NCBI GenBank assembly: GCA_020137815.1 | Contig: CM035356.1 | Span: 1,674,001 to 1,738,000, forward strand | Source of the DNA: Hormiphora californensis | Taxonomy: Eukaryota; Animalia; Ctenophora | DNA length: 64,000 nt | Direction: 5' to 3' | In this document: positions 43,222-48,332 of the stretch, piece after piece | How the letters are laid out: each line of letters begins with the position of its first letter | Position numbering within the stretch: position 1 is the stretch's first letter | The notes under the pieces: model-generated | What the model was told of the DNA's origin: nothing | Databases searched by the model: none | Seen by the model: only the letters and a program-made list of their open reading frames with translations | Made by a program: the position numbers and the translations under genes

Positions 43222-45738
43222 TCACTTGTTCCTGGATCTGAAAAGACCATTAAACAGGCCACTACTGGTAGTCTCCTGACAGGGAACAGGATGTAGAACA
43301 AGCTTACTGTCTCGAATCTGACACGCTAGCTGGAGCAACTGGTAGATATCGGTCTCTATCGGATATCGCTGCAAAACCTAAGAAATCGTTATAAAAGCAT
43401 TGAAGGTTGACAAGATACCTTATCTTATTTCGATTTTTCTAGGGGGGTGTTAGGCGACTCAAGACTATCTTACCTTCATATTGTCAATGAAATCTCCATT
43501 TATCAGACGAGTTCTTTGAGCCACTAGCATAGCACAACAAAAGTGAAGTAAAAACTGAAACCTGAGGATAATATCAATTGATATTCGGGGTCTGGAATGA
43601 ATATGATTTTAATTTTCAATTGAACTTTACCTAGTTTGGTCAGCAAAAAATGAATCCCACAGTCTTTGTATCTCCGGGTATAAAAAGTCTTGAGAAAGGA
43701 GTAGGGTGATCCAACGGAATGAAAAAAACTGAAATGATATGTGTAATATGTTGTGTACAGCAACCTGGTCCGGATATGCAAACCCGTTGTTTGAGCTGTC
43801 ACTGAACAGTGAACACACACGCGGTGCTGATATCAGTTTTAATGACGTTTCAGCCACGGTCCTTTCGGTAGAGATTTCATGACCGGGCGAAAACGCAAAA
43901 AGGGGGTCGAGCTAGGCAACGCTAACCCATGGCAACAACAACATACCTGTGGCTTAATACTCCGTTTATCTAAGGCTTCGTATAGCTGTGGATCACACTG
44001 TCGTAGTAAACACATCAACTGATCCATATTGTGGGATATACCACATTGGGAGAAATCAAGTATTTTAATGAAGTTGTCTTTAATCTCCGACATAAGACCT
44101 GAGAGAATGTTAACGTTACAATAATAACTTTTTCTAATGCAGCAAAACCACTTAACTGTCAAATATCCAACTGTACATTCGTATGTCGTAATGTACAGTG
44201 AACATTATTAACGAAAGCACGACAGTTTTATAGCGAATCCGGGACTAGTCACCCTTTGAAATAGTGTATTTTTGTGTGTGATTATACAATATGTGTTACC
44301 TGTAAAACAGAAGAAGGCATCAGCCTCTGCAAACTCCTCGTTATCCCTATTATCTGTTACAAAGGTGTAATAGATGGGGCCCAGTATCTCATTCATTCCT
44401 TGGACATAGGATATTCCAGGGTTGAGGCGGGCAAAGATAAACAGGATCCGTTCACAAACCTCCCAGTGTGCCTCCTGAGAGAAGGTCTGGGTTATTATCT
44501 TGCTATGTAAAGCGAAAAGGGACACAAAATAACCAGTACGATCACTCGATATTACTAAACAACTCTCCTGCCCCCTTCCTCTCCCCCATTTAGCTATCTC
44601 GCTTGGAGTATATAATTCAATATATAAACTCTGTCTCCCATCCTCCATCTTGTTTTGAAACAACTTTACCTGCCCCTCGGGTAAGATCTGATAAGCATCA
44701 TCATCATTATATTTTTTCTTCGGCTTCTTCAACTCTGATCTGCCACTCTTAGAGCTCGTCACACTCATGGACTGCAGGTTCGCCTGCTCAACCCTCGTTC
44801 GTAGGCTCTGGCTACAGAACGTCGCAGGAAACTTAGTTGGTTGTTGAAAGAAGCTTAAATCCGGACAAAGCCTCCGCACATCCTTATCGATTTGTGAGAG
44901 AACCTCATTTTCTTTGAAGAATCCTGTCCATATGGATGTAGGTGAAGAAGATAGTGGGTGATCATGACCATCGCCTGCGTTGTTGGGATCCACTATCATT
45001 GTCTTGATGAACTGTGTGTATGCATTCCGTTGTTTGTGCAAAACATCGTCCCAGTCGGTTTTCTCATAAGGTAAATAGTTCAGCAGAACCTTCCAGCACG
45101 TACTACGGATTCCACATCCGTCGGGAATACCTGGAAGGTTAACAAATTCGAGAGTCTAACAATAGACAGTGAATATTGTGAGCTGAATCAATAAGTTGAC
45201 CAATCGGCTGTTTTTGAGTCGCATAGTTTTGATACAATGAAATAGTGTTTATTTAGGACTGTAGACGACTCGGAGATTTATTTCAGGAAAGATAATACGG
45301 GACAGTTTCGACGTTTAACGTCATCATCAGCTCAAATTAATTTGTTTAAAGTAGTGTTGAAAAGTTTGAAACTCAGTTTCAATGATGATGATGACGTTAA
45401 ACATCGAAACCGTCCCGTATTATCTTTCCTGAAATAAATCTCCGAGTCGTCTACAGTCCTAAATAAACACTATTTCATTGTAATATTGTGAGCCCCTCTA
45501 ACATTTCTGATATAGTATGAGCAATTTGACACAAAAGTAATAGAAATGCTGATGCAACCAGGCCGTGTTACAATCAAATTGTAACACGGCCAGCCGTTGT
45601 TTATTGATATAAGTCTGATAAGACAAATTTGTATGTATTATTGTGGAGATTACCTTGAAAACAAGCATTTTCGAACTCATCTCTGTTTATTATATCCTGG
45701 GAAAGCAGATCAAGTAGGTGCTCCTTTTTAGTAGACAT
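43222..45738 (-). CDS. TBC1D13: Rab-GAP TBC1 domain family member 13
   Basis: QIDKDVRRLCPDLSFFQ, EAHWEVCERILFIFARLNPGISYVQGMNEILGPIYY, AEADAFFCF, FFSFRWITLLLSQDF, VLQRYP; stop 43222-43224. Confidence 0.93.
45235..45480. mobile_element. Foldback element with hammerhead-like cores in both arms and SL exon in the loop
   Basis: ~95-bp near-perfect inverted arms flanked by TA; minus strand reads CTGATGA-T-GACGTTAAACGTC-GAAAC-T-GTC. Confidence 0.8.
45331..45374 (-). ncRNA. Ctenophore spliced-leader exon copy lacking donor site (not an SL RNA gene)
   Basis: GAGTTTCAAACTTTTCAACACTACTTTAAACAAATTAATTTGAG matches the ctenophore SL as I recall it; followed by CT rather than GT. Confidence 0.8.
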
Positions 45739-47513: not shown

Positions 47514-47742
47514 GGAGCGCTTGGAACATGCACGGGCCTAAAGTCGCACGCTACCCGAAATTTGGGTTACTCCTTTGCGTTGCATCGAATCAAAAAATGA
47601 CCCTCAAATTTTCGAAAGATCTTGTCAAGATCTACAAAAAACTTGAGGGTCATTTTTTGATTCGATGCAAAGCAAAGGAGTGACAGTAGCCTAAATCTCG
47701 GGTGGTGCATGACTTTTCCACGTGCATGTTCTAAGCGCTCCT
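47514..47742. mobile_element. Palindromic MITE upstream of RPL22
   Basis: AGGAGCGCTTGGAACATGCACG / CGTGCATGTTCTAAGCGCTCCT plus inner TTGCATCGAATCAAAAAATGACCCTCAA arms. Confidence 0.8.
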
Positions 47743-47972: not shown

Positions 47973-48332
47973 ATGGCCCCTGTCGGACGAGGAAAGAAAG
48001 CGAAGAAGACGGTCACCAAGTACGTCTTGGACTGCACGCATCCTGCTGAAGACAGTATCTTAGACCCTGCTGATTTTGTAACATTCCTGAACTCACGGGT
48101 CAAGGTGGCTGGTAAGACGAACAATCTCGGTAGCAGCATCATGATAACTAAAGAGAAGAACTGTGTGAACCTGAGTGCTGACATTCCACTGTCAAAGAGG
48201 TACCTGAAATACCTGACGAAGAAGTACCTGAAGAAGCAGAACCTGAGGGACTGGTTGAGAGTGGTGTCTAATAGCAAGAATTCCTTTGAGCTCCGATATT
48301 TCCAAGTTGACAACGAGGAAACTGAGGAATAG
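47973..48332 (+). CDS. RPL22: 60S ribosomal protein L22 (eL22), intronless CDS
   Basis: [57 protein letters not shown]. Confidence 0.97.

Follow-up and report, generated by a model that had tools for sequence, protein, structure and literature searches.

Here we show that a foldback in the inferred first intron of a RabGAP-TBC gene of the ctenophore Hormiphora californensis is a single 299-bp insertion with a 12-bp target-site duplication (TSD), and that this dead insertion consists of two head-to-head copies of a Penelope-like element (PLE) leader. It occupies positions 45184-45482 of a 64,000-nucleotide stretch of contig CM035356.1 (assembly GCA_020137815.1, positions 1,674,001 to 1,738,000 of the forward strand; this whole stretch is hereafter the window). 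Very probably, what was copied is the 5' leader of an endonuclease-positive PLE, and the template was an RNA bearing the spliced leader (SL) of the host. A complete SL exon lies between the two arms, joined directly to a hammerhead-like core that belongs to the PLE leader.

PLEs can have a tail, usually of 30-40 bp, at one of their ends, and a truncated copy in inverted orientation next to it (Craig et al. 2021, PMC8557442), and their pseudo-long terminal repeat (pseudo-LTR) includes the first codons of the element (Arkhipova et al. 2013, PMC3846280). For an anole PLE, two internal reverse transcriptase (RT) start sites were found to bracket the tail, and both DNA strands are cleaved and extended in vitro (Frangieh et al. 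2024, PMC11167929). In dinoflagellates, DNA-encoded SL relicts mark retrocopies (PMC6050394, PMC5585692). PLE structure, the hammerheads of PLEs and the use of SL relicts as retrocopy tags in dinoflagellates are thus already known; our literature searches found no paper joining SL, PLE and hammerhead.

Results

Layout of the insertion and its host intron

A repeat search placed the inverted arms at 45233-45329 and 45386-45482, each 97 nt long and 98% complementary to the other, with a spacer of 56 nt. Inverted arms had been described in an earlier reading of the sequence (the original prediction), and they are borne out here; the extent given there, 45235-45480, was too small, since the element runs from 45184 to 45482 and is flanked by AATATTGTGAGC. 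The parts of the insertion, in window coordinates, are as follows.

45172-45183: target-site duplication, left copy, AATATTGTGAGC; an identical 12-mer stands at 45482-45493
45184-45232, minus strand: 49-nt PLE "tail", ending ..CTTATTGATTCA at 45184; ATG at 45224-45222 and 13 codons (MRLKNSRLVNLLI)
45233-45329, minus strand: arm 1, PLE leader or pseudo-LTR segment, ending ..CATTGTA at 45233; two AATAAA motifs
45299-45330, minus strand: hammerhead-like core; C3 = 45330, C17 = 45301, predicted cut 45301/45300
45331-45374, minus strand: complete 44-nt SL exon, DNA-encoded, identical to the published leader
45375-45385, plus strand: centre of the head-to-head junction; nucleotides 2-9 of a second SL copy (45375-45382), then TGA
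45386-45482, plus strand: arm 2, inverted leader copy without tail, ending ..CATTGTA at 45482; core degenerate
45482-45493: target-site duplication, right copy; its first A is common to the end of arm 2
45131-45653, minus strand: intron 1 of the RabGAP-TBC host gene (inferred); GT at 45653-45652, AG at 45132-45131

The two arms differ at two positions, a G>A change in helix II of the core and C for T in GAAAC-N-GTC of arm 2. The C at 45330 lies outside the inverted repeat, and the second SL copy at the junction centre is without SL nucleotides 10-44 and without C3. The other arm had been thought to repeat the core without the SL; it does repeat it, in degenerate form, and it still holds SL nucleotides 2-9. 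The window copy has no open reading frame (ORF) of the element.

The position of intron 1 is derived from GT..AG signals and reading frame only; across it, the frame runs on from exon 1 (ATG at 45738) into the TBC frame, and the product has a RabGAP-TBC domain (Pfam). The tail end of the insertion lies about 50 nt upstream of the inferred 3' splice site of this intron.

The leader is contiguous with a reverse transcriptase and GIY-YIG frame

The whole assembly (110.7 Mb in 45 contigs) was searched for relatives of the insertion, and the loci read in detail are a sample of the genomic loci. At one of them, L031, an 816-aa open frame (456-2903) ends 45 nt before a TATA-like box, which is followed by an intron and then by the arm. 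The frame matches RVT_1 (E=2.6e-4) and, in its C-terminal part, GIY-YIG (17 bits). It aligns with another frame of the genome at 43% identity over 613 aa (E=1e-170), whose GIY-YIG domain passes the Pfam cut-off, and its homologues combine RVT_1 with a C-terminal GIY-YIG, both above cut-off; a comparison of the L031 ORF with solved structures gave no match. The same junction of ORF end and leader is found at L032 and at the diverged locus L054. An inverted 5'-truncated copy adjoins the 5' end of L031, where 87-524 is the inverse of 1691-2128. PLE membership rests on domain order, structure and homologues, and the link to a PLE suggested by the original prediction is confirmed by L031, where the RT and GIY-YIG frame is contiguous with the arm. 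The arm is thus a PLE leader (pseudo-LTR), and the PLE is endonuclease-positive.

The order of parts at the source is the RT and GIY-YIG frame, a TATA-like box, a short exon 1, an intron of about 105 nt, the hammerhead core, some 70 nt and the ORF start. The intron, downstream of the short exon and the TATA-like box, begins GTGTGAGT and ends TTTATAG, and in the copies without SL (L029-L034) a T-rich tract with this same ending stands before CTGATGATG. The tail peptide MRLKNSRLVNLLI matches the N-termini of full-length homologues (MRLINN.., MRLLNN.. and, in P0011, MRVKNSQLVSYLKQ..), and because the tail codons match this conserved N-terminus of the clade, the 49-nt tail is taken to be the ORF start.

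The genome holds 66 GIY-YIG matches in total, many of them as inverted pairs. Two lie about 11-15 kb past the end of the window (G000:C7:1748849-1752917), the first of them in a 953-aa open frame; this is a long PLE copy near the window locus.

Head-to-head copies with one tail

A 250-bp query from the foldback gave 92 matches at 35 or more loci. The copies follow a common plan, in which an inverted copy starting TACAATG.. is followed by a variable centre, then by a forward SL and arm, and finally by a one-sided 49-nt extension ending ..CTTATTGATTCA. At the centres, partial or complete SL copies stand face to face; the junction points vary from copy to copy and often fall on the SL near-palindrome GTTT(C/G)AAAC. 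Head-to-head inverted copies include the window copy, L002-L018, L035, L036, L045 and the ORF-bearing L031. In all 13 that could be cleanly resolved, a script found one end with the 49-nt tail and the other end without it; the TSDs of these 13 copies are 10-13 bp long and, counted by hand, 77% A+T.

Copies end at two fixed sites, either at ..CATTGTA, 8 nt before the ATG, or 49 nt further on at ..GATTCA, 41 nt inside the ORF. No poly(A) was seen in the copies read, whose ends adjoin the TSD without an A-run, and no tandem units of this leader family were seen among them. Single-arm copies are common (L037, L039-L041, L043, L044); they are 5'-truncated inside the SL and end at either site, and several of them begin with the complementary near-palindrome variant GTTTGAAAC. 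Most copies are leader-only, about 150-340 bp long, and none in the genome begins at the predicted cut site of the core.

In these features the family resembles endonuclease-positive PLEs, which likewise have an RT and C-terminal GIY-YIG frame beside the repeat, head-to-head copies, a tail at one end, two fixed 3' ends around the ORF start, no poly(A), AT-rich TSDs, an intron kept in some copies and a hammerhead motif in the leader. It differs from them in that the Hormiphora copies bear the SL of their host at the 5' end, which is the palindrome centre, in the 49-nt length of the tail and in being mostly leader-only. The arms of the window copy are the usual head-to-head insertion structure of a PLE and not a functional foldback.

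Two local arrangements stand apart. L003 is a complex nest with tail-to-tail junctions through the 15-nt palindrome ACTAATAGTATTAGT and with tails on both arms, an arrangement unexplained by a simple head-to-head model. At L029, L030 and L034, leader copies adjoin a tandem array, with about 12 units of 63 nt, within clusters of histone H2A/H2B genes, and the 1.4-1.8 kb block around them, array included, is itself repeated.

The spliced leader stands in the place of an intron acceptor

The minus strand from 45374 to 45331 is letter for letter the 44-nt H. californensis leader printed in the genome paper (PMC8527503; string equality), as the original prediction had supposed. On this strand the last G of the SL (45331) is followed by C 45330, by the TGATGA core and then by two AATAAA motifs. 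An SL RNA gene needs a GT donor and an Sm-site-bearing intron part after the SL; here the SL is followed by CTGATG with no GT donor, and the earlier statement that this is not an SL RNA gene stands.

The junction between SL and CTGATGA, whose genomic copies the original prediction proposed to collect, recurs genome-wide in 42 exact and about 8 near matches, that is, in about 50 copies. An intron AG precedes CTGATGA in 8 copies genome-wide, and exon 1 joined to CTGATGA, the form of a cis-spliced cDNA copy, was found nowhere in the genome. CTGATGA is preceded by TTTATAG, the intron end, in 8 copies and by ..TTTGAG, the SL end, in about 50, with the SL exactly where the AG acceptor stands. For the SL-less parents, an AG acceptor and an intact stem I had both been envisaged; the acceptor is there, directly before CTGATGA, and an intact stem I was found in none. 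The SL always forms the 5' end or the palindrome centre of SL-bearing copies, with no conserved sequence upstream of it. One locus, L014, is a head-to-head copy of the unspliced form, with its palindrome centre inside the intron.

This arrangement extends beyond one family. In a second family (family B), often head to head, the SL is followed by CUGAAGA-A-GGGG..CCCC-GAAACGUU; in a third, linked to an ORF, an intron AG is followed by C-CUGAAGA-U-GGUGC..GCGCC-GAAA, with both short and tailed 3' ends. Among the first 100 genomic matches to the last 11 nt of the SL, a hand count found a CUGANGA box within 0-6 nt after the SL 3' end at 26 sites (four of these boxes have one base changed), where about 0.2% would be expected by chance, and the 26 boxes represent at least 9 different sequences. 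With the pattern recurring in other families, it is unlikely that an SL was captured just once at the level of DNA. The findings are read most simply if the leader RNA undergoes SL trans-splicing at the intron acceptor, with the spliced form usually serving as template. There is no sign of a targeting of SL genes by the element, a possibility that the original prediction had also considered.

A hammerhead-like core of the minimal PLE type

Read on the minus strand from C3 at 45330, the core consists of CUGAUGA, a bulged U, helix II (GACGU/ACGUC, loop UAA) and GAAAC-U-GUC. Arm 1 holds every conserved core base (C3 U4 G5 A6 N7 G8 A9...G12 A13 A14 A15.1...U16.1 H17). Arm 2 reads A-TGATGA, having lost C3, and has a C.A mismatch in helix II; an intact core is therefore present in one arm only. 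A descriptor of the minimal hammerhead (CUGANGA, with or without a bulge, followed by a helix II of 4 bp or more with a closing G-C pair and by GAAA) matched once in the 64-kb window (45330, minus strand) and never in 50 shuffles. The unpaired base after A9 and the closing pair G10.1-C11.1 are both present, and helix II of other families in the genome (GGGG/CCCC, GGUGC/GCGCC, GAGG/CCUC, GGCG/CGCC) differs in sequence yet stays paired. Core bases, bulge and helix II fit the minimal type of PLEs, in keeping with the hammerhead-like core first proposed, and we file the motif as PLE-type hammerhead-like and as a putative ribozyme only.

The outer helices are a different matter. The splice acceptor lies at the 5' edge of the core, and there is no real helix III. 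Positions 15.2-16.2 read ACCGU in the family and ACUGU in the window copy, an odd length whose extra base would leave a mismatch at the centre of a dimeric helix III, and no such helix formed when two copies were cofolded; family B, with ACGU, is palindromic at 15.2-16.2. The missing stem I reported earlier is likewise real, for no helix I was detectable with either the SL or the intron end: the best duplex has -0.8 kcal/mol in the SL form and +0.8 in the unspliced form, and 88% and 72% of shuffles, respectively, do as well or better. The suggestion that the SL substitutes for stem I is not sustained, as pairing between the SL 3' end and the strand beyond the cut is no stronger than with shuffled sequence. 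The Rfam hammerhead models for types I, II and III, HH9 and HH10 gave no match at E<=10 on 5 kb of sequence, on 331 nt or on an unspliced source copy, so that the proposed type-III fold finds no type-III match, nor a type-I match, on the 331 nt; no Rfam match is expected, because these models require helices that minimal PLE motifs lack. No other family of substance came up in these scans, in which miRNA-precursor models matched the hairpin below their cut-offs. The core is probably inert in the window copy.

With the minimal hammerheads of PLEs (Cervera and De la Pena 2014, PMC4209133) the motif shares the core bases, the unpaired base after A9, the G10.1-C11.1 pair, the absence of a real helix III and the acceptor at the 5' edge; it differs from them in the extra base in 15.2-16.2, in having no detectable helix I and in the use of the acceptor for SL trans-splicing. 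Two other identities for this sequence were tried and rejected. As a C/D-box snoRNA (UGAUGA...CUGA) it gave chance-level snoRNA matches (E>3), and the PLE context accounts for the sequence; read as a short mRNA or ORF, its ATG ATG ACG.. frame meets a stop codon after only 14 codons.

RNA evidence

Four public RNA runs were examined as contigs, which cannot show ends or levels. SL coverage is very high in these runs, where the SL is joined to many different sequences, and contigs of arm and tail occur at low coverage in all four. One contig passes from the intron into the arm (run X2). The junction of SL and core is present in one 50-nt contig from an oligo-dT library (run X1), which reaches 22 nt to one side of the junction and 25 nt to the other. 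In runs X3 and X13 contigs extend past the tail end as the source copies do, which fits an internal initiation of reverse transcription.

Run X3 contains a 168-nt contig with a depth of about 20 and adapters at both ends, which covers window positions 45191-45301. Its 5' end in RNA sense falls at 45299-45301, 1-2 nt from the predicted cut, and its other end about 33 nt past the tail; it may be a discrete cleaved RNA, or its end may be there by chance. In run X13, from organism B, contigs are 92-96% identical to tail and arm, with a different pyrimidine-rich tract ending in AG upstream; another organism thus seems to have a relative of this leader family in which the acceptor occupies the same position.

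Discussion

A proposed route from trans-spliced RNA to inverted copy

We propose that the PLE transcript would be SL trans-spliced at the intron acceptor into a capped mRNA consisting of the SL, a 106-nt leader and the ORF. The PLE reverse transcriptase would then start internally, at two sites near the ORF start, and would copy only the leader up to the RNA 5' end. Both strands of the staggered cut, 12 bp in the window copy, would act as primers, one for each start site, and the two cDNAs would be joined head to head at or near the near-palindromic 5' end of the SL. A later loss of about 36 nt of one SL (nucleotides 10-44 and C3) would account for the centre of the window copy.

Several observations weigh against the PLE reading. 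The RT and GIY-YIG scores of L031 are below the curated Pfam cut-offs. No intact full-length copy of this leader family was seen among the sampled loci; L031 itself is 5'-truncated, and its N-terminal part is single-copy in the assembly. The tail has 49 nt, versus the usual 30-40 of PLEs. The RNA support for the SL-core junction is a single 50-nt contig, which read-through of a genomic copy could yield. The two-primer origin of the inverted arms, moreover, is a proposal with a competitor.

That competitor keeps the same element and template and makes the arms by snap-back, with one cDNA folding on GTTT(C/G)AAAC at the SL 5' end and priming itself; the near-palindrome could serve either the annealing of two cDNA ends or the snap-back of one. 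Many junction centres lie exactly on it, there are the single-arm copies that start with GTTTGAAAC, and self-priming has been proposed for the palindromes of rotifer PLEs (PMC3846280). A snap-back copy should, however, reach the start of the first cDNA and so leave a tail at both ends, and all 13 resolved copies have one tailed and one short end; a PLE protein, furthermore, cleaves and extends both strands in vitro (PMC11167929). We favour two cDNAs because of this pattern of ends, the 12-bp stagger and the published double-strand priming, and regard snap-back as a serious, if distinctly less likely, possibility.

Much less probable is the account that the original prediction put forward, in which an autonomous small self-cleaving RNA, akin to a retrozyme, is trans-spliced at its core and uses the SL as cap and as stem I, the scattered copies being its cDNAs. 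It could draw on the complete set of core nucleotides with helix II, on the conservation of the SL-core junction in about 50 copies and on the adapter-flanked RNA contig with its 5' end 1-2 nt from the predicted cut. The sequence, however, is the 5' leader of the mRNA of a protein-coding PLE, with the ORF start in its tail, and not a free ribozyme RNA; the SL forms no helix I, with duplex energies no better than those of shuffles, helix III is not palindromic and no Rfam hammerhead model matches. The tandem arrays typical of animal retrozymes were not seen among the copies read, and the genome has no copies that start from the cut site. Animal non-LTR retrozymes (Cervera and De la Pena 2020, PMC7229834; preprint 10.64898/2026.07.22.740005) are nonetheless a relevant comparison, as short non-coding relatives of PLE leaders with type-I hammerheads; they form tandem arrays that give rise to circular RNAs, in contrast to the dispersed single or inverted copies with TSDs of the Hormiphora family.

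Two further explanations are scarcely credible. That the locus is an SL RNA gene or pseudogene, or an SL-derived short interspersed element moved by a long interspersed element (LINE), would suit the complete DNA-encoded SL exon, and the genome paper counted such loci as leader sequences (PMC8527503), but the SL has no GT donor after it, poly(A) is absent, what follows the SL is a PLE leader, and the copies have their 3' ends at two fixed internal sites past which both source DNA and RNA contigs continue. A functional hairpin in the host intron, as a small-RNA precursor or regulatory stem, might be read from Rfam matches to miRNA-precursor models of up to 83 bits, all of them below the gathering scores; any long perfect hairpin yields such matches, the TSD and the family structure account for the arms, and the family has not kept the arms as a hairpin, since copies with a single arm are common. 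An SL RNA gene, a LINE-type retrocopy and a DNA foldback transposon are rejected in view of the TSD, the fixed internal ends and the absence of both poly(A) and terminal inverted repeats.

The spliced leader as a tag of the copied RNA

On the preferred reading, that of a PLE leader copied from trans-spliced RNA, the SL is a natural 5'-end tag of the RNAs copied by PLE reverse transcriptase. The tag implies that the template RNAs are of the sense strand, have been processed by the spliceosome and have their 5' end beside the hammerhead-like motif. Its place at the palindrome centre implies that head-to-head PLE palindromes are joined at the true 5' end of the RNA, which bears on the question, raised for rotifer PLEs, of whether such palindromes need an antisense template (PMC3846280). 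The pattern of one tailed and one short end is an in vivo match to the two start sites and the double-strand priming seen in vitro with the anole PLE. As in dinoflagellates, a genomic SL marks passage through a mature trans-spliced RNA; the Hormiphora tag differs from the dinoflagellate relicts in sitting on the own leader of a retroelement, copied by a PLE, head to head, without poly(A) and in an animal host.

That an acceptor lies next to the core in several families points to a connection of splicing with ribozyme activity, which can be put to the test. In a broader and rather doubtful form of the idea, SL trans-splicing would be part of the PLE life cycle in ctenophores, with an acceptor maintained 0-6 nt from C3 in many PLE families that are not related to each other, a capped unit-length template and a gated ribozyme. 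If this were true, read-through or tandem transcripts would be turned into capped unit-length mRNA or template, splicing would remove the 5' strand of helix I and so switch the ribozyme off in mature RNA, and SL addition would take over or gate the role of defining the 5' end that has been proposed for the hammerhead.

Genomic copies of the spliced leader

The last 20 nt of the SL occur 662 times, dispersed over the genome. Most SL copies sampled are fused to recurring or coding-like sequences, often without the first 2-11 SL bases, and the 10 loci read in which a GT follows the SL look mostly like mRNA retrocopies, the mRNA happening to begin with GT. Most of the approximately 700 leader loci counted in the genome paper are therefore retro-inserted copies and not sources of leader RNA, and shared first exons in the annotation need rereading. 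At G000:C13:3189668-3195354, seven SL copies followed by GT are spaced by about 750 bp. No other tandem cluster was seen, and these copies are candidates for the genuine array of SL RNA genes.

Other features of the window

The inferred host intron also contains a perfect 14-nt inverted repeat with a 3-nt spacer, at 45561-45591. A near-perfect hairpin of about 125 nt at 47563-47687, with Rfam miRNA-precursor matches below the cut-offs, is probably another foldback or MITE-like insertion. At 47973-48332 (plus strand) lies an intron-less frame for ribosomal protein L22e (Pfam E=1.4e-44).

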